Assembly: GCA_964199315.1 (NCBI GenBank)
Contig: OZ116703.1
Location: 17,174,001-17,238,000, forward strand
Direction: 5' to 3'
Length of the DNA: 64,000 nt
From: Orbicella franksi
Taxonomy: Eukaryota
Numbering within the stretch: the first letter of the stretch is position 1; every line of letters starts with the position of its first letter. The notes under the pieces are model-generated. The model ran no database searches and was not told the origin of the DNA. It was given only the letters and a program-made list of their open reading frames with translations. Below, in pieces: positions 17,706 through 45,873 of this stretch. A program made the translations under genes and the position numbers.

Positions 17706-20700
17706 ATGGGGATTCCCGGACTTACAGGCTATATTAACTCAATCGGAACTCTTTGGACGTCGATCGATCTTCAAAACACAAAACTTGTCATAGACGGATC
17801 ATGTCTATCTCACTACCTTTATGTAAACAACGGCTTCGACTGCAGATGTGGCGGTCAGTACGATGAATTCTATCACGTTGTGCTTTCGTTTTTCGATGCC
17901 CTGATTTCTAACGGTGTAGAATCTTATGTGATCTTCGATGGGGCGCACCATCCAAGCGATAAAAAGATGGAAACGCTCAAGGCAAGAGCTCTGGAGAGGA
18001 TCAAGACTTCTAAAGCGTTGTCAAACTCTGCAGACGATAGGCTCTTTCTACGTCCGCTCTTGTCAAAGCTTGTTTTTCTACAGGCACTGAGGAATCGCGG
18101 CGTAAAATTTGCGGTCTGTGATAGGTAGGGAATGACAAAATCAATGATGATTTCCAGAGATAAGCATAAAAAATAGTCGTAGGAAAAGTCCACTTTGGAA
18201 AGCCTTTCACAAGGGTCGAGATGGACAGAACTGGAGATAGGCGGACTCCCCACGGGGTTTATTGTTCCGGGAAAGCCAACAGCTAAAATAATCATCAAAA
18301 ATAGTGATTAGAATAGAAAAAAAGTTCTAGCTCGCTAACAGTAACTATGGCAGTCTTTCACATAAACCTTTAAGGGATTTTATCAACAGAGACTCAGAGA
18401 GATGAAACACTGAAGTTCAATGTACGGAGTGAAAAGGGGAATATAATGACTTGGGATCGTCTACGGAATGGTGTCTAGGGGAAGTCATAGAACCGTGGAG
18501 TGTCAAGCTAGAGAGGGTGACATATCATCAACAGGTCCGGATTCAAAGAGATTTGTACCTACTTTTCTCTACTCGATTCCGACAAATTAACCTGGGAACT
18601 TCAAAGTGTCACGTTTTGTTGTAGTCGTTGATTGGGAAGTTACAAGTGAGTATTTTTTGACCAATTGACATAAAACTTTCTTTTCTCTAACCATGGAACT
18701 TATGAAGATCACCAGAATGGAGTAGCCTTTTTCATGTAAGTGTTTCAGTAAAGTGAAGTGAAGTGGTCTTGAGAAATGAGAGAGAATGTTACTTATTTTT
18801 GGGATGTGTTTACAATACTAACTGCCCTTTGTTATAATTTTTATCCTAACCTGGAGAATCTTTACACTAAAGTCGACTTTTGGAAGTCAATGTTACACAG
18901 AATTTGGGTTCACATGTTATCTTCGACTTGTTTTTTTTATCTCATCAGTGAAGCCGACACGGAAATTGCCTCCCTTGCTCGTGCCTGGAACTGTCCCGTG
19001 CTGAGCAGTGATAGTGACTTCTTCATCTTTGATATCAAAGCAGGTTACATCCCTCTTACTTTCCTCAACTGGAACTCTGATCATTTGACAGCCAGTGTTT
19101 TCTATCGGAAAAAAATGGCATCGCACTTTCGAATTCGCCCGGAATTGATTCCTCTGTTAGCTTCTTTAGCAGGGAACGATTACGTGAGTTCTGATACATT
19201 AGCTGCGTTCAATCTCGCACTAAATCGCGTTCAGACTTCGGGCGGTTTTGGGAGAAGAGGAGCAAGATTTGCAACCATCGCTAACATGCTCTCCGAACTA
19301 CCTGACTCAAGCACAGAAGAGGAGGCGTTAAAATACGCCCTACAAACGGTACCGTCGCCAGGGAGCAGAGATCAACTTAGACAAGCTGTTGAGCATTCTC
19401 TTCAGGAATACACGATCACGGAATCGATTTTATTGCGCTATTTCCAGGATGGCGTGATCAGTAGTTCCCTAAGAACCCAAAACGGCCACGAAATCAACGA
19501 GTGGCTTTTGCGCAGGTTCCGCGATGGATACTTTGCCTCTACATGTATGAGTGGCTTAACGGTGGGCAAATTCTTGCTGGGAACTTTGGTCGAGAATTGT
19601 CGGGAAATATCGGCAAATCGCTGTTCTCTGTGGCTGAGGCGGTTTGTGTATGGGATTTTGAACGATGCTGCTACTCACGGAGCGGAGGGTAATTTAACAA
19701 TGGTCCAAGAATGGGACAGAGAGGGTTTGACGGTCAAGCCGTCAAATGTGGTACCTTACCAAGAGGGCGTGGTCCCCAGTGTGAGCCTCATCCCATACCT
19801 TGATACCGAAGAACGTTTGACGTTTCTATTTTTTGCGCTCGACGTGGACACAACGCACATCAAGTACTTGCCGGATGAGTTCAAATTAATTGTAGGGTCA
19901 CTTCGTTTACTCCTCACTAACGCTCAGCCAATGTTAGAGATGAACCACCTCGTCGCTTTACTCTGCTGTTTCGTTAACTTACAAGAAGATTCGGTTGAAC
20001 AGAAAGAAACCCCTACAAATAGAAAACGTTTTTCTCAGCCGTTTGATCTGCGAGCGGCACAAAGTTTTGCTCAGTGGCAGTGTGTGTTGAGAGATGCCAT
20101 TCACCTGAATGTAACTTTGCTTGAGCCCGTACCTACACCCTACATTCACAAGACTTTCAATGGAAAACTGGCGCATAGTTTGCGAAAAGGATTGGATCAA
20201 GGTATAAAGACTTACAACGAACTTTTATGTTCATATTTATGCTCTTGTCACTAGAAATTCCATTAATATTTTATCGCGAACGCGCAAGATTTTCTAGTTG
20301 CGCCTGACCTGGTTTTCGTTACGCTAGGAGCCCTTCGTGCCTCTTTGTCACGTAAGAGGGCCCAACTTAGGTTTGGCGGTATGCGAGCTGAGAGTAAAAA
20401 TGAAGAGGGGTACGGGATGACAAGGCTTTTAATGGCGGGATGCGAGATAAAAATATTTCGGTGGGAACGGGATTTGCTCATATTGGCAGACGGGATGCGG
20501 GATGAAAAACAGAAAATCACACGTTTCGCGGAGAACTGTGACTCTAACCAGGCGGGATGAAGATAAATATTCTGACTGGCGTGGGATGGGGGGATTGAGC
20601 CAAAAATAGTGACGGGATGCGGGATAAAATAGCCTATGGTGGCCCCTCATGTAAGGGCATTTAAATCACGGCCACTTTTCACTTCATGCAACCTAATTTA

Positions 20701-21023
20701 AGTTTTTATTATTTTTCTTTTCAATGCAAGAGTAAATTTAAGTACCAGTCTTTCTTTCTTTCGTCCCTTGTTTTTCTTCAGGTCGTACACCAGAGCAGCT
20801 GATTCCTTCTTTCGGACTGTTTCGCTTGTTCCACAGACTTAAAATCGCGGTAACCAGCGACCTGTTAGAAAAGATGGCGACGAACGAGAGACACGATGGC
20901 AAAAAGATTATTAAGGAGAAATCCCGGTCAACAGTCGGGACATCAAATGCGGCATTATCCTCGGACGAAACCTTGGAAAATCGTTTTTCACTTTTGTGTG
21001 ACATTGGAGAACAACAAAGCTAA
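17706..21023 (+). CDS. ASTE1: Protein asteroid homolog 1-like PIN nuclease, copy 1 (canonical C-terminus), 637 aa
   Basis: Exons 17706-18124, 18949-20201, 20782-21023 total 1914 nt in frame. Motifs MGIPGL, LVIDG, GGQYDEF, IFDGA, SEAD, NCPVLSSDSDF, AGND, FAQWQCVL; ends ENRFSLLCDIGEQQS. Confidence 0.93.
20353..20650. mobile_element. MITE-like repeat with internal ggcgggatgcgggat motifs
   Basis: Inverted ends aagagggcccaacttagg / cctatggtggcccctcat; repeated gggatgcggga motifs. Lies in intron 2 of ASTE1 copy 1. Confidence 0.5.
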
Positions 21024-22256: not shown

Positions 22257-25200
22257 ATGGGCGTTCGAGGACTTACCAGTTACATTAACTCAATCGGGAG
22301 TCTTTGGACACAAACTGAGCTTCGAAATACAAAGCTTGTCATTGATGGACCTGGCGTATGTAACTGCCTTTACGTGGACAGTGGCTTCGACCGTCAATTT
22401 GGAGGCCAATACGAGGAGTTTTACAAAGTCGTTCTGTCGTTTTTCGACGCTCTGGATTCTCGGGGTGTAGATTCCTTTGTAGTGCTCGATGGCGCTCATG
22501 ATCGAAGCGATAAAAAGTTAGACACTTTCAAGAAAAGATCAGTGTAGAGGATCCAAGCTGGTGACGCGCTGTGCAACGGTAGATCAACTGATGGTGATGT
22601 CTTCGTTCTGCCGCTTTTGTCAAATCTTGTCTTTGTGCAAGCGCTCAGGGATCGCGGTGTAAAATTTGCTGTTCCTGACTGGTAAGTTTTAACGCAATGT
22701 AAAATAAAGTAGATTTTACAGATAATGATAACGTAGGAACAACAAAATAGCGAGCGTCTTTTCTGCGAAGTCATTATCCTCTCTGCGAAGCTTGCGTCCT
22801 GTCTGGTCTTTCTGCGAAGCAAGGCGTCTTTTCTGTGAAGTGTGTGTCCTTTCTGCGAAGTGCTCTTCCTTCCTGCGTCTAATACAGGAAGGATGTTCAA
22901 ATGTGGGCTATAAAATGCTGAGCTTTGCAGTGTAAATGAATGAATGGTAATTAATTTTGTAATTCAGTTTGTTATCGTAAGCGGTTTCCTGTTTCAGTTT
23001 CGCTTTTGCACGCAGTCCCTATCACGCAACAAGGAAATGCTGCGCAACGAACCCAAACAATAGTGTGAAAAGATTGTGTAAATGAGGTTGATGAAAGTAA
23101 ACAGGAGTATTTTGTGTACGATCTTATACCTATTTCTACAGGAACGATCGCTGACTTGAAAAGAGTGAAACTGGCTTACTTCAATTTCCGCTTCTACTTG
23201 AGCTTGTTTATGTCAATGAGTAGTAAGTGAATCGGGACTGCAAGAGAGCCTTTCCCTGTTTCAGTAAGGAGAGCTGCACTTGTAATATTCCCGGCTTAAA
23301 CCGGTCACATTGGGCCAGGGATTATACAAAACATCAGTTACTAGTAAGTTAACATACAGTTAGTGCTAACTGCACTCCCAACACTGCAACCCGGAAATCA
23401 AACTGATGTATAACGCCAGAAGTCTAAAAAGTTTCAAATTTGTCATTTCGTACATATGCGCACGCAATGTAAGGCATACTTTTTGTTACTTCATACTCCT
23501 TCCAGATTACGAAGGACGAATTAACTAGCTGTAATTTTCATGTTTCTTTTCAGTGAAGCGGATTCTGAAGTCGCCTCCTTGGCCAACGCTTATAACTGCC
23601 CTGTATTAAGCAATGACAGCGATTTCTTTATCTTTGATATCGAAGCAGGCTACATCCCACTTTCCTCTTTCGACTGGAAGTCTAGTCGCCTAACAGCCAA
23701 AATTTTCCATCGGAGAAAATTGGCGTCACACTTAAGAATTCACGCAGAATTGCTGCCTATGTTCGCTTCTTTAGTGGGCAATGATTACGTCAGCATTGAT
23801 GCATTGGAACCGTTCATCCATGCCCTTAGTCGCAGTCAGTATTCCATGGATCATTCTAGCAAGAAAGAAGCCAGATTTGCTGGGATCGCAAATATGCTTT
23901 CCACCGTACCTGACAAATTTGTTCTCCAAATGGTGTCGTCTTATGGCGGGATTCAACTAAGGCAAGCTGTTGAGCATTCTCTACAAGAGTACTCGATCAC
24001 AGACTCGAATTTGTTGCGCTATTTCCAAAAACGCGTGATCAGTAGTTCTCTCAGAACCCAAAACGGCCGAGAAATCGACGAGTGGCTTTTGCGCAAGTTC
24101 CGAGAAGGACAGTTTTCTACTAATTGTATGAGCGGCTTAACATCGGGAAAGGTCTTGCTCAGATTCCAGGTTGAAAACTGTCGGGAAAAGTCGGCGAATT
24201 ACTGCTCCCAGAAGCTGAGGCGGTTTGTTTATGGGATTTTAAACGATGATGAAGTTTACAACCGGAGAGGAAATGTAGCGATGGTTGAAGAATGGGACAG
24301 AGAGGGTTTGACGGTGAAGCCGTCAAATGTTACTCCCTACCAAGAGGGTGTGGTCCGAGTGAGTCTTATCCCATGCCTTGATGCTGAAAACAGACTAACG
24401 GTTTTGCTAAATGCGCTTAATTCAAATACACCTTCCATAAGATTGTTGCCGGAGAAGTTTAAATTAATTGCAGCGTCACTTCGTTTTCTCAAGAGCAACG
24501 CACAGCCACCTTTGAAGACGAATCACCTTACCGCCATACTCTGCAGTTGTATTAAACTACAGGACGGCTCGTGGAAACAATACATCTCCCTATCTCAGTC
24601 GTTTGATCGGCAAGCGGCACAAAGTTTTGCTCAGTGGCAGTGTGTTTTGAGAGATGCTGTTCATCTGAACTTTGTTTTGATTGAGCCTGTTGAAACACCA
24701 TGTATTCACAAAACGTTTAATGGACGACTGGCGCACTGTCTGCTGAGCGAACTTGATCGAGGTCAGTCTCCTTCCTGATAAATGCTTGCTTGTTTCTTTT
24801 TATTTCAAGGGGGAGGGAGGAGGGGAGGGGGATCGCGTAGAGTTTATGCCAATGTTTGTTTCGTTCCGATATTTTTTGTTGGTATAGTGAGAGAGTCCAT
24901 GCACTGTTAACGCTGCACTTTGCCACAATGTTTCCAGGAACTTGTTCTGTTTTCTTTTGTTCTCTAAATGTCAAGAATTTATCTCCTTAGCCATTGCCGT
25001 ACCTAGAACATTTGAAAGGAGCAATGTCAACTAGTAGTTTTGTCAACCTCGTGCCCAGGGAGCTTTGAAGGGATAAGCCTTGGTCACGAGTTGGCTTCAA
25101 ATCGAGGGCGACCATAAACTAAGAGACTAACACATAGGTGAAAGAACCTTAGGTAATGATAAACTGAAACAAGATCTAGGTTTGTTGTGATTGATCGATT

Positions 25201-26486: not shown

Positions 26487-26519
<33 letters not shown>

Positions 26520-27564: not shown

Positions 27565-29349
27565 TGATTTTTCCCTTGCAAGTCAATAGCGAAAACTGCC
27601 GAAGAGTTTGGATTAATAGGCAACAGTGACTATGTTCCGGCTGTCAGTATTATTTATATTAAGATAACTCAAAACAGTTTCCAGCATTTAGATTTTGATT
27701 TAGTCATGGTAGTTGATTTTGCAGTATTTCAGTTTGTAATTTATCCTCACTACATTTCTATTGTTGGGATCACGTTAGACTAAGTTATGGGAGGAATCCG
27801 AGACCGCCTAAGCAAAAGATATGCAGCAAGGCCAGGTGAGCGGTGGTCACTTCCACCAGGTCCACCAGGGGAGGATGGAGGGGCGCAAAGTGTCTTCCCA
27901 CGGCAATCTCGTCAAACTGCAAGATTTCGCACTGCCCAGCCAGATTTTATGTTCGAAAGGCCGCAAAGGATCATACTAGACGCCACTAACCTAGACCCTC
28001 GGGATTAGCGGAATGTAACCCGTTATCGCGAATCGGTCATTATATATGCAGTGAGAATAGTTGAAATAGTTTACGATTCTAAATTCATATTATCTCACCC
28101 TTTAAATTACTTTACACCTTTTTGTGGTGTTACTAGTTACGTCGAAGTAAAGCTTCTCAGAAAGTGTTAACTTCACTGTTTTCCTGCTGTTTTTAACGGG
28201 CCACAGTAAGAAATATTACTGAAATTTGTGAGTTTAAATAACCATTTACCTTAATTACCAGACGTTTGCCGGTGATCAACAAAAATTGAAAGCTGGGCTT
28301 CGCCTTCTTGGTGAGCCGTCAGTGCTATGAAAAGAATCTGGGAGATTTGCGTCCTCAGTTAAACGTCATCGCTTCTGCATGCATTGCGTGCCGTTTATTA
28401 AACGTTGCCAAAAGTTGCGTCTTATCCTGCTGATTGAAATTTGGTAATATAATAAAATTTCACCGTGCCGTTTTTGAATTATAAGCCCCTAAAGCTGTAA
28501 TTAAGGCTGCTTTTAGCAGGTCATACTGTTGCTATGGTAACCTATTGTATCACGAAAATAATAACAACGTGTTCACCAATGATTGGGCAGCTTTTTGATA
28601 TCATGATTGTAGCATCAAGTGATAAAGCGTGGTTATAACGACCCCTCAAAATCTAAGTGCTGGAAACTGTAACGGCAGGAATCGAAATGTAGTTTTATAT
28701 TACAGCCAAGAATGTGAGTACAATCTCCAAATCCAGATAGAAATATGAAAATTCATGGCAAATTCGGCCTCATGGTACATATTCTCCATAAACTGAAATC
28801 CAAAACTTGATCATTTTCTTTACTGGTAGAGGAGGGTAAATGAATATACAATACGTATAATGCAAGCCATTCTATGATTTTTTCTAGCTGTGTTGTCATT
28901 ACGGTGCCCAGAATATCGTTTTGTAAACAAGCCATCAAGATTAAAGAGGCTCAAGCAAAAAGGTTTAAATTTCAGTAATAATGGATTATGTAAAGCTTTG
29001 AAAAACACAAAATATTGATGTACAAATAGGGCAAAAATATTTCTGCGGTGAAGACGCCTCGCCGATCTAAATGGTGCACGCTTCGTGATGGTTACAAAAC
29101 AAGTTCTTTGAAGTTTAAGAGTATATGTCAATAAGGATCAAATAAATCGCGGACACAGCTCAAAATTCAATTCCGCCCATACTTTGTCCATTGGTAGTGA
29201 AAAAGACATTAAAAAGGAAAGTTAAAGAAAGAAAAAATTATAAAAATTAAAAGAGACCTAATATTTTAAATTACAGAAGATTAATCTGTATACATAGTCT
29301 TTCGTAATAAGTTGTAGCTTTTATATCGAATTGTTAATGCCTGATGTAT

Positions 29350-29569
29350 NNNNNNNNNNNNNNNNNNNNNNNNNNNNNNNNNNNNNNNNNNNNNNNNNNN
29401 NNNNNNNNNNNNNNNNNNNNNNNNNNNNNNNNNNNNNNNNNNNNNNNNNNNNNNNNNNNNNNNNNNNNNNNNNNNNNNNNNNNNNNNNNNNNNNNNNNNN
29501 NNNNNNNNNNNNNNNNNNNNNNNNNNNNNNNNNNNNNNNNNNNNNNNNNNNNNNNNNNNNNNNNNNNNN
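29350..29569. other. Assembly gap (220 N)
   Basis: Run of n characters. Confidence 1.
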
Positions 29570-29757
29570 CACCCTTTGTTTCACACACTAAAATAATTTG
29601 TTGTTTGGTCAGTATTTGTCATAGAAAATAGTTCTCGTGGATTGTATATTCTGAAAAGTAAAACCAATATAACTGAACTGCCCAGAAAGGAGATTTGCAA
29701 CCGAAACCGAAGATATCAACAAAACGCAGCTTCATGCTTCAGTAGCCACCAAATATC

Positions 29758-30729
29758 GGCATCTCATAAAACCCGAAACAACGAAACGAAACCACCGAAA
29801 CCACCGAAACCACCGAAACGAGCGAAACGAAACCACCGTAACGAAACCACCGAAACAAGCGAAACGACCGAAACAAGTAAAATAGTAAGTAAATAAATAA
29901 AAATGTTTTAAAAAAACAGCCTTGATCTCTGGAAAGTTACTATGGCAGCCTGATCTCGTACCCAGATCCTGCTCTTTAGCCACACGCGTGACATCATGAC
30001 ATTTTGAAAGATGGATGAGCACAAGGGTGTCTACGATTTGCTTCTTTGTAAATTTGCCCTGATTACCCATAATGTCCATTAGAGCGTGAAGGGGTCTATT
30101 CTTAACGCTCAAATAATGAAATGTGTTTTTTTTTGTTTGTTTTTGTTGCTGTCGTTTTCTCTTCAGCATTTGTCGCTGATATACTGATTGCAACTGAGAT
30201 AACGGTTAATTATGAGTTGTTCCCAAGAAAATTTATTAAAAGATCGTTGAGTTTGATTGTCAATTGAAGCTTTTTTCATTCCTCACTCCCATGAACTAAC
30301 CTCTGCTGAGTGAACCCTAAAAAGCTGATTCCCCCTCCTCCCCTACCATACAGTTTACACGCAATCTAAGGGGAAAAGTAGCGATACCGACTGAGACGTT
30401 ATCAATGAATACTTCTTATCCTAACTTTTCTATTACTTTCCTTTCTTTTCTTTTCCCATCTACTTTGGTCGGCGTTCCACCCTTAAAATACATACAAAAA
30501 TACAACAACATTTTCTTTCAGTCTTTACAAGACAGCTGTACTGCTCGAAGTACTAAATGTAATATAATTCTGTCTTTCGCTGGCCCGTGGTTTTGTTTTG
30601 GTCGTTTCGTATCGTATTTGTCGTATCTGTCTTTCGTTTTGGTTGTTTCGTTTGTTTCGGTGGTTTCGTTTCGCTCGTTTCGCTTGTTTCGGTGGTTTCG
30701 TTTCGTTGTTTCGGGTTTTAGTACATGCC
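29758..30729. mobile_element. Non-autonomous Mutator-like element (MULE) nested in the TTAA element
   Basis: Perfect 9-bp TSD CCAAATATC (29749-29757, 30730-30738). Long TIRs starting GGCAT...aaaacccgaaacaacgaaacgaaaccaccgaaac, built from cgaaac microrepeats. Confidence 0.85.
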
Positions 30730-31117
30730 CCAAATATCTTGTGTAAACAAATTGACAGTTGTCATGAAAACAAGCAAAAATCTGCTTGAGTCGACCTCCA
30801 ATTTAATTCATTGTCTAGATAAAAGGCAGAAACCAAGTCTCAACTTAATTTAGCTTATCATATTTTAATTTTTAATGTACTTTTTGGCATGCGATCAATT
30901 GTTTCTTGATGGTCATCTTAGTTGTAACTTTAATATGGCGGCAGCAGCAAATCTCGAAAATAAGCAAATTTCAAACAAAAGTGCGTTTACCGTAAAACTA
31001 AAAGGTATCCCAAAATATTTCAAGTATTTCTGTGAACGTCTATCCTTATACTTTATCTGCAATATAGTTATTGGGTTTTTCTTCGCGAACCGACAAGCGT
31101 TTTCGGCCGTTGTTTAA

Positions 31118-31746
31118 GGTCATTCCTCACATTTGCATTGCGCATCCTTACTGCGCATAATTTATGGCGTCATTAGCGCGCACATTGAAAACATGACGGG
31201 TTTGCCTGGATATTGAGCTCTGTCAGTTGAAAAATGGCTCTAGCTCACCAACGAGCAAGGGCACCTCAATTTTTTTTCCAGTCATTGTAATCAACTAATC
31301 ATAAGCTTTGCGTGAGAAAAGACTTATTTAATTTCTATTGCTGAAAATTGAATAAATAAGAAAAATAGCAGATACAATGTGGTCTTTTCTATTTTGCAGT
31401 CGGTAACCACGTCAAGAAATTTGGTTCAAATTTTTAATCAAGGATTTAGCTTTCCGTCTGAATCACACTTAAAACGTTTATTTGTGTCCGACACATTGTA
31501 TTGACTGTAGTTTAATGTGTGTTCTTATGAGTCCGGGCTCACAAAGATGTTACAATTACTGGGAATGTGTTCTTATGATAAGCATTAAATAATGCCAAAA
31601 TGGGGCATTTTCAATGCCTCATTGCTCCTTAATGAGCATGGGCACCCCCTTTTTTATTTCAAAATTGAAGTTATCATATGACAAATATTGAGTGGGCAAA
31701 GTTTGAACAAAAATCTATTGTCACTTTTTATTTCAGAGGAATTACC
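31118..31746. mobile_element. Kolobok-like MITE nested in the TTAA element
   Basis: TTAA|GGTCATTCCTC...GAGGAATTACC|TTAA; same family as 62333-62785. Confidence 0.8.
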
Positions 31747-32187
31747 TTAAGGGTACCACAGAGCTATTGAAAAAAACAGCTGCAAGGCGTCTTTGCGCAA
31801 AAATTCATAAACTATTTATAACTAGAAAATATCTGCTTTTCATGTCATCAATGAATTGGTCAAGGCCCTAACTATAGTGTTATTGCAAAGGAAAATTCAC
31901 AGATGATTTTCGACTTGACGCTGACGAGCTATGGATATGACAGAATTTTGATAGTTCAAATATCGAAATTTGGCTCTCGATCCGAAATTAGGGGTTTCTA
32001 TTTAATTACTCTCAAAAAAATAAATATTACAACAAACTAACCTTGTTTTGTCTACTTTGGCACAAGGGCCTATCAATATAGAAAGTACGAGTGAAATCGA
32101 TTATTTGGCTGTGTCCGCGATTTTGATGAACATATCTGATTTTTACTGACTCAGACTCTTAAACCTTTTCAGGACGATTCAATCAAG

Positions 32188-35100
32188 ATGGGAGTTCGCG
32201 GACTTACCAGCTATGTCAACTCAATCGAAACTCTCTGGAAACGTCAGACCAAGCTCAAAAACACAAAACTTATCATAGACGGGTCCGGCTTATGTAACGA
32301 TCTTTACAGGAACGCCTTCGACTGTCGACATGGAGGCCAGTACGAAGAGTTCCACGACGCTGTACTTTCGTTTTTCAATGCGCTTGATTCTAACGGTGTA
32401 GAATCCTTTGTAGTCCTCGATGGTGCACAACATGTAAGCGACAAAAAGTTAGAGACACGCAAGAAAAGGGCAAATCAGAGGATCGAAACATCTTTTGCCT
32501 TAGCCGAGAATCGGGCACCAGAAAACAGCGAAGACTTTCTTCTTCCGCTTTTGTCGAAGTTTGTGTTTCTGCAGGCGCTGATGGATCTCACGAGGGATCA
32601 CGGTGTCAAATTCGCGGTCTGCGACAGGTAGGACGCATTATTACATTATTATAGTAGTAACAGTAGTAAATGTTTGCATGCATACAGTCGAATAGATAGG
32701 TGACTTGGAGACTGTTGCCAGTGACTGGACAGATATCTCCTTTGTGGTACGGCGAGATTAAAAATTTACCGAGCGAAGCAGCCATGCCTATGCAGATCAC
32801 TTAAGATGGTGACATCTTGGCGATGTCAGCTGTCAGAATGAACTAAATAATCTGCATTTTAGCTTATTTCACCAATTTTAGAATAACAGTACTTTTCATT
32901 TATTAGCCTGCGTAGCAAACGCTGGAGTAACGGCGAGAAGACGGTCGCGGGCGTAGACACGCAAGGAAAAGGAAATGCTTATTCCACTTGTCGACATTTT
33001 ACCGAACGCGCCCTAACATGCCGCTCTCCCTTGGGGCGCCAACTGTCCCATGAGAACCAATGATCATCAATGTCCGCCAAATCAAGCGCCCAGCTTGAGT
33101 CCGCTAACAGCAAATAGTAATGCGCGTTACATAATGACCGAGTGTTATTACGCGAAACGTGACTCTCGCCTTGCAGCATATGGAGATGTTGTGTTACAAA
33201 AGTTTGAATTTATAAAGGTTTGGATGAGGAAAATAATCGACATTATAGCTGAAATTTTGATATTTTTCAATAAGAATGACTTACCTCAATGCCTTGTTGT
33301 CTTTTCTAGTGTCTTCTCGCTTCTGAGCTCGATCCGAAGCCTTTTTACCGACTTATCGCTTTTTGATTTTCCTCTCCTTTCTTAGATTAAAATAATAATA
33401 ATAACTCCTCGCATCGTAAGCTTGGGCCGCCTGTGTTAAAATTTTCTCCTTCACTCCCACGAGTATTTGATAAATGGATTACAAGGACATCCTGTCCACA
33501 TATAGTACTAGACTCTAAGCATCGGTTTTAGATCGATGTGTTTGCCGTTTTGCGAAAGACCTCTCAACGTTTCCTGAACAGAAAATTCGGATTATACATG
33601 AATGTCAAATTTCTAATGTCACTTTTGACCAATCAAATTGCACTATTGCTTCCCGTTCGTGGGCGAACTAAACTGCGAGAAGGCTCCCTTGTTGTTTGGG
33701 TAGCGTATCGCGGGCAAGGGCGGCGGAGCCGCAACCGCGAGCCGGCGAAGCTGGCGAGAAGAATGGGGCGAGGAGAACTTTACCTCCCCCCATTCTTCTC
33801 GCCTGCTTCGCCGGCTTGCGGTTGCGGCTCCGCCGCCCTTGCCCGCGATACGCTACCCAAACAAGAAGTGAGCCTGCTTGCGGGCTAAACGGAGCTCGTT
33901 AAAATGGTTGGGATTGCAGGCGATTCCTTTTCTCCCCACCCCCTCCAATTCTCGCTCACCCCCTCCCCACCTCTCCCCAATTTTTTGCTCACTCCAGGCG
34001 CACTTCTTTGCTCGCCCGCTTCCTCGCTCGCTTGTTCGATCTCTTAGACTGGTGGCAGTCTGTTTTTCTCTCGAATTTCAGAAGGGGTTATGATGCGAGA
34101 CGTTTTGGCTAAAGGGGAATGGGACCAGACATGGGCGCGGCACGCACGAGAAGAAAAAATTTTCTCGTCTCGCCTTCTTCCCTACTCGGCCACCGCCATA
34201 CCGCCCTTTTGCGTTCGCGATGACTAAACACTCGTCGTAGTTCTAGCAGACCATCGATGTCTCCGCCTGGAAAAGGAAAGTAAACGGTTGCTACGCAGGT
34301 CATCACTCGAGCGTCTGCTATGCAGAGTATATTTTTATCCATACTACAGGCAAATGAATTGAGATTCTCGATCCTCGATCTTCCGACGAGGCACGACATT
34401 TAATTAAACAGAGAGTAATGGATTGAAGAAATGAATCAGTTTGGTGACGTTAGCGATATTGTTTCAGTTTCCAGGCCTTTTGATTCTTTTATACCTGAAA
34501 GATTTATTGCAAATAAACAACTAACGTAGCTACTTGGTATGAATGTAGATGCGGCGAGAATTGTTGAATCAGAATTTTTTTCTTGGAGTGTTTTTCATAA
34601 TAAACAGACACCGGAGACCAGAATCCTTGATTTGAGCGAGACGACGAGCATCCTCGACCTTTTCATATCAAAGTTCCTCCCCCCTTCACACCCCCCCCCC
34701 CCGCCCCGGGAACAAATGCAATGACAAAAGGATACAATTGCCTTGCCTAAGCACATCTTTATGTTTCTTTCAGCGAAGCAGACAATGAAATCGCCTCCTT
34801 AGCCAGCGCTTGGAACTGCCCTGTTTTAAGCAATGACAGCGACTTCTTTATCTTTGATATCAAAGGCGGCTACATCCCACTTTCTTCTTTCAATTGGAAA
34901 GCTGGTTTCTTAACTGCCGACATCTTCTATCGGGAAAAACTGGCATCACACTTTGGAATTAGCGAAGAATTTCTTCCTTTGTTCGCTTCTTTGGTGGGGA
35001 ATGATTACGTGAGTTCCGAGGCATTGGCAGAGTTTAGACCCACACTGAATTGCGGAAAAGCGTCAAGATTTGCAAGCATTGCTAACATTCTGTCTCACTC

Positions 35101-38100
35101 CAGGACAGAAGAAGAGGCGCTCGAGTCTGCTCTACTAATGGTAGAGTCAGTGGTAAGCAGAGATAAACTAAGACAAGCTGTCAAGCATTCTCTCCAGGAA
35201 TACAAGATCACAGAGTCACATTTGCTGCTCTATGTCGACAGTGGTGTGGTCGACAGCTCCTTGAAGACTCAAAATGGCCGTGAAATTGAAGGATGGATTT
35301 TGCCCAAGTTTCGCAAGGGACTGTTCTCCGCCAAATGTATGAACGCCTTGACAACGGGGAAACACTTTCTCAGAACTCAGGTTGAAAACTGTGAGGAAGT
35401 ATCGGCTAATCAGTGCTCTCAGCGCCTGAGGAAAGTCATGTATGGCATTTTAAACGATGCTGCAGCTCACGATGGGGAAGGAAATATAACGATGGTCCAA
35501 GAATGGGACAGAGAGGGCTTAGAGGTCAAGTCGTCAAATGTGCCACCCTACCAAGAGGGCGTAGTCCCTGGAGTGAGTCTCATTCCAAGCCTCAAGAAAG
35601 ATGAAAGATTAGAGGTTTTGTTAAATGCGCTTGATTCAAACACAGCTTCCATCAAGTCCTTGCCGGAGAAGTTTAAATTAATTGCAGCCTCACTTCGTTT
35701 TCTCGCAAGTAACGCACAGCCATCGTTGCAGGGGAATCACATCACCGCCATACTCTGCAGTTGTATTAAACTAGAAGACGGCTCGTGGAAACAATACATG
35801 AAAAGCACAATCAGTCAGTCGTTTGATCGGCAAGCAGCACAAAGCTTTGCTCAGTGGCAGTGTGTTTTGAGAGATGCTGTTCATCTGAACTTTGTTTTGC
35901 TTGAGCCTGTTGAAACACCGTGTATTCACAAAACGTTTAATGGACAACTGGCGCACTGTCTACAGAGCGGACTTGATCGAGGTGAGTCTTTTTCCGGATG
36001 AATGCTTGCTTGCTTCTTTTTCTCTATTTCGGAGGGGGGGGTGGGTTTCAGGGGGGGAGGGAGAAGGGGAGGGCTGAGTCACCTGGGGTTTATACCAACT
36101 ACGAACCCCATGCACCGTTGGCAATGCACTTTGTCACAATGTTTCCAGGAACTTGTTCTGTTTTTCTTTTGTTGTGTGAATGTCAAGAATTTATCTCTTC
36201 AGCCATTCCAGTGCCTAGAAACTTGAAACGAGCTATGTCAACAAGAAGCTATGTCAACCTCATGCCTAGGGCGATTTGCAGGGATAAACGTCCTGGAAAC
36301 GAGCTGGCTTCAAATCGGGGGCGACCATAAACTAAGAGGCTAACACTTAAGTGAAAGAAACTTAGATAACGATAAAACGAAAAAGGAACTAGGTTTATTG
36401 TGATTGATTGATTTTAAATTTAAAATTGAAACATTTAGACAAAATGTTTCGAAATGTGCCATCCACTGTTCTTAGGTCCCGCGAATTCTTCGAATTAACG
36501 TAATTATTGCCTATCTCTCTTTCAGGTCGCATGCCAGAAGTGTTGCTTCCCTCTTCCAACCTTCTTTACGGAGACATTTGCAATGCGTTAGAGAGAAAAG
36601 GTAGAATAAGATCGTTCTCAATTACATTTTACTTTTCGTTTTATGACTACTGTCATTGTTTCAACGTTGTTAAAAAATTCACTGTGAAGCGTTAATGAAG
36701 GAATTCCTGCTTTCTAGGGAAAAGTACGCTAAAAGGTAATCAATGTTTTAGCATGAGTTTGCTTTCCGTGAAGAATCTCGGATAAGTGAAAAAAATGTGA
36801 ATGGGATCGTGGCGAGAGGAGGAATGGAGAACGCGAACAGAACTCAATCTTCTTGAGAAACCGAATAACCTTAATCGAAAACATGAGAAAAAAAAGGCGA
36901 AAGAAATCATTTTAAAGTTGATAAGGTACTACTGGACTGGCTTAATCTTGCTTCAGTTAACCACGGACCGATCTACCTTTTGTTTTATTTTATCTTCCTT
37001 CCTGGTGATTATAGGCAAAATTAGTGTTGGCCTCAACACAAAATACCCTGGTGTCACACATCAGAAGTCGTACCAAACTAGGAATAGCTATCGCTCCTCG
37101 ACTCAGTCTTGCTCTTCCATGGACAGCAGGAGTGCGTTTTACAGGTAGAAATATTTTCTCTTTATCCACCCTGTTTCCCACATACCATCCCCGTTTTTTT
37201 GAATGTATTGAATGTCTGTCAACAGACTATTTTTTCGCAGACTACAAGGTCAAAAATTTATGATTCTATTAAATCTGAGTGCCTTATCAGTAACAAGTTG
37301 GCAAGAATGTCTTATTTCATTGTGTGTTCAACATTTAATTTCTCATAACCACTTCACTGCATACAAAACGATGCGGGAACGAAGTAGAACACGCCAAGTG
37401 GACCAAGTCTTGACATGGTACCAAAATCTCTGAACTTATTATAAAATAATTGTGTCGCCATCAGTGAAGAGAATTAATGCTTTACTAGCTCTGCCATGGC
37501 TGATAGACAAAGCCAAATGGTGTCGAGTTGTGACTTCAGGGTGAAGGTGACAGCTCTGGTTAATTTCATTTTAGTCCAACAAAACGAAGGGAAGAACATA
37601 GTCATACAAGACGGACAAAGCAGATGTCTACGAGGAAACAGCAGCAGCAGCAGCAGCGGCGGGTATCGTCATCACAATATGTACGTAGTCAAATATCTTC
37701 GCAGGGTCAATCAATCAATTCTATTAATTTTATGCATCGCTGTTATAATGTAACGAAAACCTGCCACTCAGCCGCTGGTGTCTTCGACCCCGTAGAAAAA
37801 ACATATTTTTGCAAACCCGCACAGCTTCTCGACTAACGTCCATGTCTCCAATAGTCTCTCTCTCTAATTTGACTCAATGCACCGTACCGAAACATCACGG
37901 TAAGACGTTTGCGACGTCGCCACTTCAACCGCAACTGTTACCAGCGTTAACAATTTCTCTTTCTTCCCGAAACAGAATGCGTCCCATAAACGACATGACC
38001 GACCTATGTATTACTCTCCACTTCCTCAAGGTGGAGCAAGTTGGAGCTTGCCCTTGTCCTCTAGTAAAGGGTATTACCAGGAACAACAGTATGCCCAACC

Positions 38101-38491
38101 CAGCGTCTATTCAAGTGGTCATCACGCTTGTAAACCTAAGCCAGTGACAACTAGATCCAGTAGGGTAGCACAGCGGGCTTACACACAACAAATAAGAGAA
38201 TATGAAATCTTTGCCGGGATTCAGAACTTAAATCTACGTGCAAACCCGAGCCACAGCAGCAAGAACTTCGCAGCAGGCGAGAACATGCTCTCGCGATCTT
38301 CGCTACGACCGAGGGAGGTATCGCCACCGGGATTGGTGTCGCCAGGCTCCAAAAGTGCATCAGCAGCTTCTTACAATCCAGTTGGCTATAAGAATGAAGG
38401 CAAAACACCACCGACTGCAAGACCTCGTCGGCCCAAGTCTAAAGCGTCTAAGCCATCAGCTAGCCACCATTCCCAGTCTTCCGCTCGGTGA
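32188..38491 (+). CDS. ASTE1: ASTE1 copy 3 (chimeric; disordered tail), 824 aa
   Basis: Exons 32188-32627, 34774-35981, 36526-36600, 37015-37144, 37575-37680, 37976-38491 total 2475 nt in frame. Catalytic motifs IDG, LDG, EAD, NDSDF and GND intact. Confidence 0.88.
32904..34325. mobile_element. TAGCCTGCGTAGCA-family MITE with nested insertions in intron 1 of copy 3
   Basis: Ends tagcctgcgtagcaaacgc / gcgtctgctatgcagag. A shorter version sits at the equivalent position in copy 4 intron 1 (about 42368-42560). Boundaries approximate. Confidence 0.55.
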
Positions 38492-38806: not shown

Positions 38807-38864
38807 GCTAGGGTGGGGAGGGGTCAGGGTGTCTGTATAAGACAAGGCAGACGCTGAGAAGTGA

Positions 38865-40852: not shown

Positions 40853-41377
40853 AATACCACATGTGGCACTAAATTTGTGCAGGAGTTTATTTTTGCGAAT
40901 CGGCGATTTTTTTGTATTTTGCGGAACTAATTTTTGCTATTGAAAATATTGATTTTTCTTGCTGGATCCTAATTGTTTCGATTGTCGGGAAGTTGCATTT
41001 AATTGAAAATACAACATTTCCGCATTTTTCAAATTAAAGTTCATGCAGTTGACAAGTGAAAGAAAATGTAGAGATGTAAAACACAAACACACAAGTAATC
41101 AGTGTCACTCTATTGTAGAATGCCCTTCTGAATGTATTATCTTTGGACGATCCTTTCCTGTACTTTTTTTTTTATTTCTGAACGTTTTGTTTCTCATTCT
41201 ATCGTTTTGACGTTTTCAATAAATGGCAGCAGCAAGATTCTACTTGTGATATTTTTATGTGTAATTTCGCCAGTGGAGTAAGTTTTTGCGGGAATTTTAT
41301 TTTGGGGGAACGTTTCTTGCGGATCACTGTAAAAACTGCAAAAATTAGAACCCGTCAAAATTTTGTGCCACACGGTA
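40853..41377. mobile_element. MITE (TACCGTGTGGCAC family) interrupting the promoter-homology block upstream of copy 4
   Basis: Ends accacatgtggcactaaatt / aaaattttgtgccacacggta; absent from the homologous block 28670-29114. Boundaries approximate. Confidence 0.6.
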
Positions 41378-41709
41378 CAATGCCCAAATATAGATGGCAA
41401 GATGAAAGTTAATGAAAAACTCAGCCACGTGGTACATATTCTCCAGAAACTGAAATCCGAAACTTGATCATTTTCTTTATTGGTAAAGGAAAATAAAAGA
41501 CGTATAATGCATGCGCAAGCCATATTTAATTAAGTTTCAGTAATGATGGATTATGTAAAGCTTTCAAAAACGCAAAAATACTTATGCATAAATAGAGCAA
41601 AAATAATGCTAGGGTGATTCTAAACCTTATGTGCCTGTGGAGGAGGTTTCGTGACGGTTACACAACGAGTACTTTGAAGTTGGAACATTTTGAGGACGAT
41701 TCTATCAAG

Positions 41710-44700
41710 ATGGGAGTTCGCGGGCTGACCAGCTACGTCAACTCAATCGAAACTCTCTGGAAACGTCAGACCAAGCTCAAAAACACAAAACTTATCATAG
41801 ACGGGTCCGGCTTATGTAACGATCTTTACAGGAACGCCTTCGACTGTCGACATGGAGGCCAGTACGAAGAGTTCCACAACGCTGTACTTTCGTTTTTCAA
41901 TGCGCTTGATTCTAATGGTGTAGAATCCTTTGTAGTCCTCGATGGTGCACAACATGCAAGCGGCAAAAAGTTAGAGACACACAAGAAAAGGGCAAATCAG
42001 AGGATCGAAACATCTTGTGCCTTAGCCGAGAATCGGGCACCAGAAAAGGGCGAAGACTTTCTACTTCCGGCTTTATCGAAGCTTGTGTTTCTGCAGGCGC
42101 TGATGGATCATAGCGTCAAATTCGCGGTCTGCGACAGGTAGGATGCAATATTACAGTATTAAATGTTAGCATAATAGTCGAATGGTTAGCTGACTTGGAG
42201 ACTGTTACCAGCGACTGGACATATCTCCTTCGTTGTATGGCGAGAATAAAATTTGCCGAGCGAACATAAAGGATGGTTACATCTTGTCGATGTCAGCTGT
42301 CAGCTCTCAGAATGAACTAAATAATCTACATTTCAATTGATTTCACCAATTTCAGAATATTAGAATATTAGACTGCGTAGCAAACGCTGGAGCAATAGGA
42401 AGCGAATTAGAGCGGCGTAAGAGTGAGAAAACGTTCGCGGGCGGAGGCACGTGAGGTGAAGGAACAGAAGGAAATGAGGTGCTTATTCCACTTGTCGCGT
42501 GCGTCTCCACGCGAACTCGCGCCTTTTCACGATCACTCGAGCGTCTGCTAAGCAGACTTCATTTTAATTCATGCTAGCGCAAACATTCTTGGTTCTCGAT
42601 CTTCCGACGAGGCATGACATTTCATTGAATAGAGGATAATGGATTGAGCAAATGCATTGGGTGACGTTAGTGATATTGTTTCAGTTTCCAGGCCTTTTAA
42701 TTCTTTTAAACCTGAAGGATTTATTTCAAATAAACAACTAGCGTAGCTTACCCAGGATGACTGTAGACGTGGCGAGAATTGTACCGTGATTTAGAAAATG
42801 GAAAGGAAGGAAGGGAAGTGGGGGAGCGACGAGGTCGTTACCTCTACTTTCTTCCTTGCCCCCGTGGGGGGACTCCCATATGAAAAGGTCGGGGATACTC
42901 GTCGGAAAATTTGAATTAAACCCCCGAAAAGAGTTTGGGCGTGGCTCGAGCTTTATTTGATCCCTTAAAGATACTACTTAAAACGAAATAGGCTTCCGCT
43001 CAGTAAAAAGGACTGGAGAGACCTTCAGAAACCGGGCTTAAAAACGGAAAGAAGAGCGTTTTTAATTATTATTTCTTTGAGTACGTCTCGTCATAAACAG
43101 AGACCAGAGACCAGAATCCTTGATTTATACCTCTAAAGGCTGGTTTTCACTAGCGACGGAGTCGGAGTCGGAGTCGTAGTCAGAGACGTAAGAGTGCTTA
43201 CGACCTAGTGAAAATCGAAAATCGGAGTCGTAAGCGGAGTCATAAGCTCGACGGAATCGGAGTCGGAAGAATCAGAACGTTTCCATTTCTTCCGATTCCG
43301 TTTACGACTCCGTCGCTTATGATCCAATGAAAACTAGATTGTCGGAGTCGGAACCAGAAGCGGAAGAACCAACCAATCACAAGGCCCAGAATGGATCATT
43401 GTAATTGGTTTATTCTTCCGCTACAGCTTCCGACTCCGACAATCTAGTTTTCACTGGATCGTAAGCGACGGAGTCATAAACGGAATGGTTGTTCTTCTTC
43501 CGACTCCGTCGGTTTGATTTTCACTAGTTCGTATCACTCTACGCTTCTGATTATGACTCCGACCACGACTCCGTCGCTAGTAAAAACCAGCCATGAGCGA
43601 GACGACGACCATCACTGACCTTTTCATATCAAAGTTTCCCCCCCTTCTCCCCCCCCCCCCCTCTCCCGGGGATGAATTTCATGACAAAAGGATACAGCTG
43701 CCTGGTTGCAACAAGCTTGTCTAAGTACATCTTTATGTTTCTTTCAGCGAAGCAGACAATGAAATCGCCTCCTTGGCCAGCGCTTGGAACTGCCCTGTTT
43801 TAGGCAATGACAGCGACTTCTTTATCTTTGATATAAAAGACGGCTACATCCCACTTTCTTCTTTCAACTGGAAGGCTGATGGGTTAACTGCCGACATTTT
43901 CTATCGAGAAGAACTGGCATCGCACTTTGGAATCCGCGCAGAATTTCTTCCTTTGTTCGCTTCTTTGGTGGGGAATGATTACGTCAGTTTCGAGGTATTG
44001 GCAGAGTTTAGACCCACACTGAATCGCGGAAAAGCGTCAAGATTTGCAAGCATTGCTAACATTCTATCGGACTCAAGGACAGAAGAAGAGGCGCTCGAGT
44101 CCGCGCTACGAATGGTAGGGTCAGCGGTAAGCAGAGATAAACTAAGACAAGCTGTCGACCATTCTCTCCAGGAATACAAGATCACAGAGTCAAATTTACT
44201 GCACTTTTTCGATAGTGGTGTGGTCGACAGCTCCTTGAGGACTCAAAATGGCCGTAAAATTGAAGAATGGATCTTGCTCAAGTTTCGCAAGGGACTGTTC
44301 TCCGCCAAATGTATGAACGCCTTGACAACGGGGAAAATCCTTCTCAGAACTCAGGTTGAAAACTGTGAGGAAGTATCGGCTAATCAGTGCTCTCAGCGCC
44401 TGAGGAAAGTCATGTATGGCATTTTAAACGATGCTGCAGCTCACGACGGGAGAGGAAATATAACGATGGTCCAAGAATGGGACAGAGAGGGCTTAGAGGT
44501 CAAGTCGTCAAATGTGCCACCCTACCAGGAGGGCGTGGTCGCTAGAGTGAGTCTCATTCCGCGCTTCGAGAAAGAAGTAAGATTAGAGATTTTGTTAAAT
44601 GCGCTTGATTTAAACACAGCTTGCATCAAGTCCTTGCCGGAGAAGTTTAAATTAATTGCAGCGTCACTACGTTTCCTCGTTAATAACGCTCAGCCAATGT

Positions 44701-45873
44701 TAAAGGTGAACCATCTCGTCTCTTTACTCTGCTGTTGTCTTATTTTGGAAGACGATTCCACTGAACATAAAGGAAACGCTGAGACCAGTACGTTTGATCT
44801 AGGAGCGGCACAAAGCTTTTCTCAGTGGCAGTGTGTTTTGAGGGACGCCATTGATCTTAACTTCATTTTGTGTGAGCCCTTAACTACACTGTGTGTTCAC
44901 AAGACGTTCAATGGAAAACTGGCTCATAGTCTGCAGGAAAAGTTAAATCAAGGTATATCTTTCCGGTACAAATGCGTACAGACAATTTGTTTTAAAATCT
45001 GACAAATATCGAGAGTGTCAAGGCTGTGTAGCTCTCTCTCCTAGTCATTTAATGCTAAAATCTTACTCCAGACCAAAAGGACTTGAAAGCCACATCCTTT
45101 GGCACCACGCACACCAATATAGCTTATATTAGGGCGTACCCTCTGGGGGTCCTAGAAATGGAACACACCAAGCTAACACAGTCGTGGGAAAAGGATTCCG
45201 GATATGGTTGGATTACCGTCTCCGAAAATTGACTCGGCTTGTAATTTTCGTCCAAGAAGCGTCAGCCAATTGGCCATTTCCGAGTTAGGTTGTGCCTCTG
45301 TTTCAAAATGAGTCCTCGTGCAAAGTCTTTCATATGAAGATGTATTTGATTTGCACGAAAGTGAACCTATAGCAGAATTGTTGTGCATCAAGTCTCATTT
45401 TGATATAGAGGCACAAGGGAACTCGGCAATGGCCTATTGCCATGTACTCGCTGACTGGTTGTTCTAGCATGAGGGAATTTTCACGGGGCGCAACTGTTTT
45501 CTACTTGCTGCTGTAATCGACTTTGCTTTAAGTAGGCTCTACTCTTTTCCTGGATGTTTCTTATCATCGGTTGTAGAGAATAAAACCTTCTCTTCTCTTC
45601 GCTTCTAGATTCAAATTATATAAACATCACTACATGCTATATTGAGAAACAGAATGAGAACTGTTTGCTTTACATCTTTCAGGTCGAACCCCAGAAGAGC
45701 TGCTTCCATCCTTTAGAAACCAGTTGTTTTACAAAGAACTTAACAACGCAGTAACTGATGGCTTACAGGCAAAGCTGATCAGTGATGAGGGGCAGAAAAG
45801 TTTCTGTATTTATTTTGTTGTCGTATTGCTAGTGGTATTTTGTTGCGTCGGATTCTCTCTTCTTCGAGTATGA
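41710..45873 (+). CDS. ASTE1: ASTE1 copy 4 with predicted C-terminal transmembrane anchor, 607 aa
   Basis: Exons 41710-42137, 43748-44952, 45683-45873 total 1824 nt in frame. Catalytic motifs intact. Last exon GRTPEELLPSFRNQLFYKELNNAVTDGLQAKLISDEGQKSFCIYFVVVLLVVFCCVGFSLLRV*. Confidence 0.88.
43138..43592. mobile_element. Harbinger-like MITE in intron 1 of copy 4
   Basis: TIR GGCTGGTTTTCACTAGCGACGGAGTCG / CGACTCCGTCGCTAGTAAAAACCAGCC; absent at the homologous position of copy 3 intron 1 (about 34630). Confidence 0.7.

Follow-up and report, generated by a model that had tools for sequence, protein, structure and literature searches.

Four genes for ASTE1-type nucleases stand side by side on the plus strand of an Orbicella stony coral (nt 17706-45873), and they join one conserved catalytic core to three different C-terminal ends, confirmed here as T1 (copy 1), T2 (copies 2 and 3) and T4 (copy 4). 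The four-copy array described in an earlier note on this DNA was recovered by tblastn and Pfam searches, and tblastn against the whole window (the complete stretch of 64,000 nt under analysis) revealed no extra ASTE1 fragments. Transcription and the modelled splicing are established for copies 1, 2 and 4. The arrangement is probably that of a tandem ASTE1-type nuclease family that arose in robust stony corals, the tails deciding the location or binding partners of each enzyme. Coordinates are collected in Table 1.

Table 1. Features of the array, in window positions
Feature	Span	Exons or detail	Strand	Basis
Copy 1 (T1, canonical), 637 aa	17706..21023	17706-18124, 18949-20201, 20782-21023	+	gene model
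Copy 2 (T2), 896 codons	22257..27564	22257-22681, 23554-24761, 25312-25392, 25866-25995, 26427-26553, 26845 (or 26851)-27564	+	GT..AG joints, RNA contigs
Insertion, ~3.05 kb	29113..32164		.	32-nt imperfect inverted repeats at both ends
Copy 3 (hybrid)	32188..38491	32188-32627, 34774-35981, 36526-36600, 37015-37144, 37575-37680, 37976-38491	+	splice sites mapped from copy 2
Recombination breakpoint, copy 3 exon 2	35659..35695	fuzzy zone ~35600-35720	+	diagnostic sites
Copy 4 (T4), 607 aa from conserved ATG	41710..45873	41710-42137, 43748-44952, 45683-45873	+	gene model, RefSeq, JGI contig

A conserved nuclease core in four copies

Pfam places XPG_N in exon 1 and XPG_I_2 (Asteroid) in exon 2, the domain order of the ASTE1/Asteroid family. 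XPG_N was matched by exon 1 of copies 1, 3 and 4 and not by that of copy 2, for which the scan ended at the stop; XPG_I_2 was matched by exon 2 of copies 1, 2 and 4, the exon-2 fragment of copy 3 having been scanned without its N-terminal part. The full-length proteins of copies 1 and 4 and their Oculina orthologues match the same Pfam domains, PF27698 (Asteroid_N) is precomputed on close homologues, and NCBI names the coral proteins asteroid homologues. As the earlier note had observed, the first two introns are common to all copies; they agree in both position and phase (exon 1 ends in phase 2 and exon 2 in phase 1, with GT donors), and exon 3 opens with G-R-(T/M)-P-E at nt 20781, 25311, 36525 and 45682 in copies 1 to 4.

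The acidic motifs IDG, (F/L)DG, EAD, DSD and GND(Y), also listed in that note, are found in 4/4 copies. When the copy 1 protein is aligned to human EXO1, IDG, FDG, EAD and DSD fall on the matching EXO1 motifs, the residues of which we take to be D30, D78, E150/D152 and D171/D173. The full FEN1/EXO1-type set of metal-binding carboxylates is present, the seventh (equivalent to EXO1 D225) being recognised by motif only. An ESM Atlas model of copy 4 (pTM 0.85) superimposes on two chordate ASTE1/asteroid clusters with a TM-score of 0.85 over 569 residues; the modelled fold is that of copy 4 only, to which the cores of copies 1-3 are 57-88% identical. The core is also structurally similar to FAM120A/B/C and yeast Mkt1 (TM 0.81 for FAM120B and 0.70 for Mkt1 clusters), and weak FAM120A Pfam matches were recorded, but these TM-scores lie below that of ASTE1 and the coral proteins carry Asteroid_N. 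The FAM120 and Mkt1 proteins are not known to have a complete catalytic carboxylate set.

The coral proteins resemble vertebrate ASTE1 and Drosophila asteroid in their domains (XPG_N, XPG_I_2, Asteroid_N), acidic active site and predicted fold (modelled for copy 4), and copy 1 also retains the family-wide C-terminal NRFxxL motif. They differ in being encoded by four tandem genes, three of which lack NRFxxL and carry instead a disordered tail of ~350 aa or a tail-anchor helix. A literature search found no paper on the array, and exact-sequence look-up of the window ORFs gave zero matches; the suggestion that such an array had not been described is nevertheless only partly right, as RefSeq already holds Orbicella faveolata models for copies 1 and 4, the latter including the membrane-anchor end, and neighbouring genes with T2 and T4 tails are annotated in Oculina patagonica.

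Three C-terminal ends

All tail types share homology over the opening ~27-36 residues of exon 3, so that divergence sets in within this exon or beyond it and not, as previously proposed, directly after its start. The T1 tail of copy 1 carries a basic patch followed by a C-terminal ENRFSLL motif. It was thought to end at NRFSLL, but the protein continues for 9 residues to a stop at nt 21021-21023. Copy 1 shares a 90% cluster with RefSeq XP_020624188.1 (637 aa) and with ORFs of 637 aa on JGI contigs (2.6 and 7.8 kb) that are necessarily spliced. Since NRFxxL is present in 43/124 full-length-like family representatives as well as in copy 1, T1 is the canonical tail; it is the ancestral tail of the family, and T2 and T4 are derived. 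The NRFxxL motif with the acidic residues behind it, kept in T1, is absent from copies 2, 3 and 4. Because the fold is not defined by this motif, the ASTE1 membership of the T2 and T4 proteins stands, but the loss of the motif marks them as divergent members of the family. Calling the three ends interchangeable modules, as in the earlier note, is apt with regard to one core, three ends and an exchange of tails, but overstates the case given this ancestral-to-derived relationship.

The T2 tail is spread over four exons and comprises ~350 aa of low complexity, with a polyGln run, an abundance of Ser, Pro, Gln and Tyr, and an acidic-aromatic end. The multi-exon disordered tail reported for copies 2 and 3 was borne out in copy 2 by exon joints in RNA contigs: all five introns are spliced in frame in contigs X26 (polyA) and X7, from polyA and cDNA libraries, with loose contig ends connecting nt 26553 to either 26845 or 26851. 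Raw polyA runs labelled as the same species (X23, X24) placed only 0-2 reads on copy 2, and the evidence of expression is therefore that of assembled contigs, from RNA libraries in which unspliced sequence is present as well. Two in-frame stops have to be added to the earlier account, a TAG at nt 22545-22547 (codon 97) of the reference copy 2, which had been missed, and a TGA at nt 38489-38491 in the tail exon of copy 3. Position 22545 is C (giving CAG) in both X26 and X7, and a related coral encodes Gln at this codon. The copy 2 allele of X26 carries a 17-nt deletion, after which the tail ends almost at the truncation point of copy 3, bringing the truncating variants of T2 to three. T2 tail ORFs fall in 22 clusters, and their frame and motif islands are kept even at the distance of Oculina. 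With residues 520-722 of the Oculina protein, its T2 tail, as query, no other full-length core-plus-T2 protein came up in the protein collection searched.

Copy 4 has an in-frame upstream ATG at nt 41629, the start used in the RefSeq model XP_020624173.1 (634 aa), which has the same C-terminal end. In JGI contig L005, nt 44952 is joined to nt 45683 by splicing, and the 3' UTR continues to at least nt 46403. The protein ends in a hydrophobic helix of ~21 residues followed by Arg-Val and the stop; the 19-residue Kyte-Doolittle mean reaches 2.94 at 2 residues ahead of the copy 4 stop, and 3.29 in Oculina. One C-terminal helix with a very short stretch behind it and an N-terminus formed by XPG_N make up the architecture of a tail-anchored protein, as judged by Kyte-Doolittle hydropathy. 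The hydrophobic anchor noticed earlier is present in the RefSeq model, in a spliced transcript and in five further coral T4 genes. Of 7 T4 genes, 6 (copy 4, L003, L006, L007, L008 and Oculina) retain the helix and the position of the stop, the exception being a T4 gene of the related coral (L002) that lost the helix through a frameshift. Among the full-length-like sequences compared (the best-scoring family representatives and a few coral proteins), a C-terminal hydrophobic helix occurs in two coral T4 proteins only. An origin of the helix from T1 by frameshift was rejected, as exon 3 of copy 1 contains no hydrophobic frame and homology at the DNA level is gradually lost beyond ~110 nt.

Copy 3 as a hybrid of copies 4 and 2

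Sliding-window identity shows exon 2 of copy 3 to be copy 4-like for its initial ~900 nt, from where the gene is copy 2-like through the whole tail. To the left of the breakpoint 192/216 diagnostic sites have the copy 4 state, and to the right of it 68/79 have the copy 2 state. Copy 3 is a copy 4 (5')/copy 2 (3') hybrid, and since the breakpoint lies inside exon 2, tail exchange by unequal crossing-over, the substance of the earlier idea of tail swapping, is directly shown. The duplicated units are colinear (nt 24400-35780 and 35614-44754). Copy 3 preserves the splice sites of copy 2 in frame, and its core is open. Its tail is cut short by the TGA, beyond which the homologous frame stays open to nt 38728, and the same TGA is read in an independent metagenomic genomic contig (L009; 97% identical to the copy 3 tail). 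A protein, P0126, with Trp at this position was rejected as evidence against the stop; its contig reads TGA, and the translation had used another genetic code.

A single unequal crossover as the sole event was also rejected, because the 5' half of copy 3 is nearer to copy 4 (7% exon and 16% intron divergence) than its 3' half is to copy 2 (12% and 23%); later gene conversion or rate differences must therefore be added. In a copy 4 transcript from another sample, 7 consecutive sites have the copy 3 state and constitute a gene-conversion tract. Copy 3 arose when a T4 gene, supplying the 5' part, underwent unequal crossing-over inside exon 2 with a T2 gene that supplied the 3' part; a unit of ~9-11 kb was duplicated in the process, and short conversion tracts were afterwards exchanged between copies 3 and 4. 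Copy 3 is absent from both arrays of the related coral, which run copy 1-copy 2-copy 4.

The insertion between copies 2 and 3 ends 26 bp upstream of the copy 3 ATG and contains internal inverted arrays of 9-nt repeats of the CGAAACC type; it is probably a non-autonomous DNA transposon. Within it lies an N gap (nt 29350-29569) in AT-rich, non-coding sequence, which touches no exon and is situated between the stop of copy 2 (nt 27564) and the start of copy 3. The DNA flanking the insertion is colinear with an uninterrupted paralogous site (41681|41684). Together with the inverted-repeat ends across the gap, this supports the order and orientation of the copies without the gap being read. An assembly artefact, either a mis-join over the gap or collapsed or chimeric haplotypes, is very improbable as an explanation of the four-copy array or of copy 3, even though copies 2 and 3 are separated by a gap of unknown length and a chimeric assembly that joins two paralogs could yield exactly such a hybrid. 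The gap is enclosed by a single insertion with its ends on opposite sides, the breakpoint lies 6 kb away in continuous sequence, and copy 3 has diverged by 7-16% from copy 4 and by 12-23% from copy 2 and is therefore no mosaic of their reads. The independent L009 contig across the copy 3 tail, the conversion tract derived from copy 3 and the identical gene order in related corals all argue likewise.

Selection, origin and possible functions

In a tree reconstruction, copy 1 falls in a clade that includes Acropora, Porites and Stylophora, and copies 2 and 4 form a clade (SH-aLRT 97) of robust-coral sequences only. The three tail types are old, and other robust corals have conserved them; the paralog order T1-T2-T4 is conserved too. 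Pairwise dN/dS values for the core are 0.09-0.32 in exon 1 and 0.25-0.44 in exon 2, and the core is under purifying selection in all copies. Values for the tails are 0.25 for T1 and 0.27 for T4 (63 codons only), with 0.59-0.83 in exon 6 of T2, which looks like weak constraint, almost neutral, rather than positive selection. As all pairwise values are below 1, no signature of positive selection was found.

Human ASTE1 is described as being recruited in an SHLD2-dependent manner and as trimming 3' overhangs (PMC9894118, PMC10398656, PMC12599495); this recruitment and the structure-specific endonuclease activity are known for the human protein only. The preferred explanation is that structure-specific nucleases of the ASTE1 type (Asteroid; XPG/Rad2-like) expanded in tandem within robust stony corals. 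In the T2 lineage the NRFxxL end has been replaced by four exons for the low-complexity tail, and in the T4 lineage by a single helix of the tail-anchor type. Each paralog would be an active nuclease with a tail that sets its location and binding. The T1 tail may bind the ancestral NRFxxL partner, presumably in nuclear DNA repair; T2 proteins could act via weakly constrained linear motifs in the disordered tail, the distal third of which may be dispensable or decaying; and T4 proteins would enter an internal membrane post-translationally, leaving the nuclease on the cytosolic side. The nucleus, condensates and membrane named as destinations in the earlier note are conjectures of the same kind, drawn from sequence.

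It is unlikely, if still worth weighing, that only copy 1 matters and that the T2 genes, and perhaps T4, are duplicates turning into pseudogenes, with functionless, captured non-coding DNA for tails. The stop at codon 97 of the reference copy 2, the copy 3 TGA seen in a second genomic contig, the 17-nt frameshift allele of X26, the near-neutral dN/dS of T2 exon 6, the related-coral T4 gene that lost its helix and the transposon-like insertion adjoining the copy 3 ATG would all fit such decay. Against this, copy 2 shows low core dN/dS relative to its orthologue (0.10 in exon 1, 0.25 in exon 2), codon 97 is intact in both RNA data sets and in the related coral, and 5/5 introns are spliced in frame, so the signs of a pseudogene came out negative for this copy. 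The persistence of the T2 frame and motif islands to Oculina, and of the T4 helix and stop position at a dN/dS of 0.27, likewise speaks against functionless tails. An innate nucleic-acid-defence family, the kind of expansion that the earlier note had in mind, driven by an arms race against viruses or mobile DNA, is less probable again. The tandem expansion is lineage-specific with ongoing recombination among the copies, and a membrane-tethered, cytosol-facing nuclease would be like TREX1, a tail-anchored enzyme that disposes of DNA in the cytosol (PMC11904002), but the dN/dS values speak against an arms race, the window showed no linked immune genes, and no literature supporting a defence role was found.

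The outline of T4, an N-terminal nuclease with a single (predicted) C-terminal membrane helix, is that of TREX1, an ER DNase that removes cytosolic DNA (PMC11904002), yet the folds are unrelated (DEDD exonuclease in TREX1, XPG/PIN-like in T4) and the likeness is one of functional analogy only. More speculatively, and with rather low probability, T4 may be a TREX1-convergent, cytosol-facing nuclease that degrades DNA of the cytosol or from organelles, or the replication intermediates of viruses or transposons, at the surface of the ER or of mitochondria in corals, with T2 taking the same core to a disorder-mediated compartment. If true, the ASTE1 core would serve nucleic-acid surveillance in cnidarians as a cutting module open to reuse, in addition to its part in double-strand-break repair.

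ASTE1 is known from a single role, in which it acts downstream of shieldin and trims resected DNA ends in human cells; Zhao et al. 2021 is said to be the source study. The T2 genes had been without a full-length core-plus-tail model in the protein collection searched, and the nonsense codons of the reference at the array are not species-wide. The array offers a natural experiment in which a constrained core has been joined to an NRFxxL end, a disordered tail or a membrane anchor, and the datable hybrid copy 3 shows the mode by which tails are exchanged. Constructs made from it could be used to ask what the NRFxxL partner is, whether an XPG-type nuclease can work from a membrane, and whether corals employ such nucleases outside the nucleus.

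The ASTE1 array and its gene models

Exactly four ASTE1 copies, all on the + strand, were detected in the window by tblastn with coral ASTE1 proteins as queries, which bears out the four-copy tandem array proposed in an earlier note. Intron phases are the same throughout (phase 2 behind exon 1, phase 1 behind exon 2), consistent with the claim that the first two introns are common to all copies. Exon 1 matches Pfam XPG_N and exon 2 XPG_I_2, and Asteroid_N is a precomputed family on close homologues. The acidic nuclease motifs are, as had been claimed, kept in all four copies, and they align with the corresponding motifs of human EXO1, whose active-site residues there are D30, D78, E150, D152, D171 and D173. 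Modelled by ESM Atlas, copy 4 matches chordate ASTE1 clusters across ~570 residues (TM 0.85). Because of these domain, motif and fold matches, membership of copies 1–4 in the ASTE1/Asteroid family is well founded. The window comes from a stony coral. Copy 4 exon 2 is 100% identical to Orbicella faveolata RefSeq proteins XP_020624181.1 and XP_020624173.1, both named 'protein asteroid homolog 1-like', and copy 1 shares a 90% cluster with XP_020624188.1. For copy 4 the RefSeq model chose an in-frame ATG at 41629, 81 nt 5' of the conserved start; the homologous XPG_N domain starts at 41710.

Gene models of the four ASTE1 copies (window positions)
Copy	Exon 1	Exon 2	Exon 3	Strand
1	17706-18124	18949-20201	20782-21023	+
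2	22257-22681	23554-24761	from 25312	+
3	32188-32627	34774-35981	from 36526	+
4	41710-42137	43748-44952	45683-45873	+

The N gap at 29350-29569 falls within AT-rich non-coding DNA between the copy 2 stop and the copy 3 ATG, and bears on no exon and no reading frame. The ~3.05-kb segment around it (29113-32164) has no counterpart at the paralogous site 5' of copy 4 (41681/41684). This segment, 26 bp 5' of the copy 3 ATG, is flanked by 32-nt imperfect inverted repeats; within it, at 29774-29877 and 30632-30713, a 9-nt repeat of CGAAACC type forms inverted arrays. It is probably a DNA transposon of the non-autonomous kind, and its ends showed no clear target-site duplication. Since the insertion has one end on each side of the gap, and the DNA beyond these ends is colinear with uninterrupted sequence elsewhere, order and orientation across the gap are supported. 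Large exon-like ORFs 3' of the array, at 52953-54062 (-), which opens with SAM-domain-like sequence, and 58861-60048 (-), which is Pro-rich, look like an unrelated neighbouring gene. An exon-like ORF of 222 aa lies 5' of the array (3426-4094, -).

Three tail types

The earlier note had the tails diverge right behind the first residues of exon 3; three tail types are indeed present, but the first ~27 residues of this exon are homologous in all copies. In copy 1 (tail T1) the same exon extends via a basic patch to ENRFSLL, which is not the terminus, as had been stated, but is followed by nine more residues. A motif scan covered the 150 top-scoring representatives of the family, taken from 50%-identity clusters, and a few coral proteins. 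T1 is the family's canonical end, since [N/S/G]RFxxL occurs in the last 40 residues of 43 of the 124 full-length-like proteins, mostly followed by acidic residues. T1 is also found on transcripts and models of Pocillopora and other corals. The family motif is lost in the other two tail types.

Contigs from RNA libraries X26 (polyA) and X7 (cDNA) carry the copy 2 GT..AG joints 22681/23554, 24761/25312, 25392/25866 and 25995/26427, and loose contig ends join 26553 to 26845 or 26851. The last exon has these two acceptors in use, 6 nt apart, so that Lys-Gln is either included or skipped; of the two, only the second is retained in copy 3, the first having been lost. The six exons of copy 2 form a single open frame of 896 codons. 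Its tail, of type T2 (~350 aa), which copy 3 has as well, is rich in Ser (16%), Pro (10%), Gln (9%, with a polyGln run) and Tyr, and has an acidic-aromatic C-terminal end. A homologous tail is carried by an annotated Oculina patagonica gene, G037923, and no other full-length T2 protein was found in the searched protein collection. T2 tail ORFs form 22 clusters, with a Pfam family on 0/22. Copy 2 ends in EDF-stop (27562-27564), most homologous tails in DFW-stop, as do some near-identical database ORFs (228 vs 227 aa). A TGG/TGA polymorphism may affect the last Trp codon.

In copy 4, exon 3 extends into a hydrophobic segment of ~21 residues (Kyte-Doolittle 2.94), followed by Arg-Val and a stop (tail T4). 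A transcript contig from JGI (L005) is joined at 44952/45683 and reads on into the 3' UTR, and the T4 end is identical in the RefSeq model. Splicing of copies 1, 2 and 4 is real. The T4 helix is retained in G037924 of Oculina, and four further coral assemblies (L003, L006, L007, L008) have it too; in one duplicate (L002) it was lost via a frameshift. No other full-length-like family sequence checked has a C-terminal hydrophobic helix of this kind. Judged by its sequence, T4 looks like the end of a classical tail-anchored protein.

Tail exchange and the hybrid copy 3

In the tree, Acropora, Porites and Stylophora sequences fall within the copy 1 clade, and a separate clade of copies 2 and 4 (SH-aLRT 97) holds robust-coral sequences only. 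A T1-like exon 3 persists in a pocilloporid-like paralog on the copy 2 side. This paralog and the clade membership show T1 to be the ancestral tail and T2 and T4 to be derived ones. T2 and T4 genes lie side by side in Oculina. In a related coral, one 378-kb contig (ENA ERZ26858540, loci L001-L004) holds two complete arrays spaced ~85 kb apart, both in the order 1-2-4, with copy 3 in neither. In the second of these arrays, copy 2 is broken and intron 2 of copy 1 harbours an element that bears a reverse transcriptase.

Copy 3 is a hybrid. Along exon 2 its identity to copy 4 stays at 0.90-0.97 as far as roughly alignment column 975 and is 0.62-0.72 thereafter, and the reverse holds for copy 2. 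Left of 35659-35695, 192/216 diagnostic sites are in the copy 4 state; to the right, 68/79 are in the copy 2 state. The stretch 24400-35780 is colinear with 35614-44754 over its entire length, and the pattern is what unequal crossing-over of a T2 gene with a T4 gene leaves behind. Tails have thus been exchanged via recombination. The L005 transcript, from another sample, has the copy 4 state of the window at 144/151 sites diagnostic for copies 3 and 4 (43748-44952), with seven consecutive copy 3-state sites at exon 2 nt 700-797. This run is a short inter-paralog gene-conversion tract, so gene conversion continues.

Constraint and possible function

Values of dN/dS against orthologues were 0.09-0.32 for exon 1, 0.25-0.44 for exon 2, 0.25 for the T1 tail, 0.27 for the T4 tail and 0.59-0.83 for T2 exon 6. 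Copy 2 codon 97 is TAG in the reference; position 22545 is C (CAG) in both RNA data sets, and the related coral has Gln. The copy 3 tail contains a TGA (38489-38491), present too in an independent genomic contig; Trp at this codon in a database protein was rejected as a genetic-code artefact. An X26 allele of copy 2, not seen in X7, lacks 17 nt (27339-27355), which shifts the frame and shortens the tail by ~70 residues, to an end nearly coinciding with the copy 3 TGA. From the dN/dS values and truncating defects, the core of T2 genes is constrained and the distal tail is not. For the innate-defence type of expansion that had been suggested, no sign of an arms race was seen.

The array had been thought undescribed. 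In the literature searched, no paper on a coral asteroid homolog or 'asteroid homolog 1-like' was found, and coral work was absent among the papers listed for ASTE1 in general, but copies 1 and 4 were already known as RefSeq models and GenBank contains the genes of Oculina. In humans, SHLD2 recruits ASTE1 to trim 3' overhangs (PMC9894118, PMC10398656, PMC12599495). TREX1, which clears cytosolic DNA, is tail-anchored (PMC11904002), and the likeness of T4 to it is offered as an analogy only. The core is conserved and appears catalytically competent, and the tails would determine the location and partners of these nucleases.
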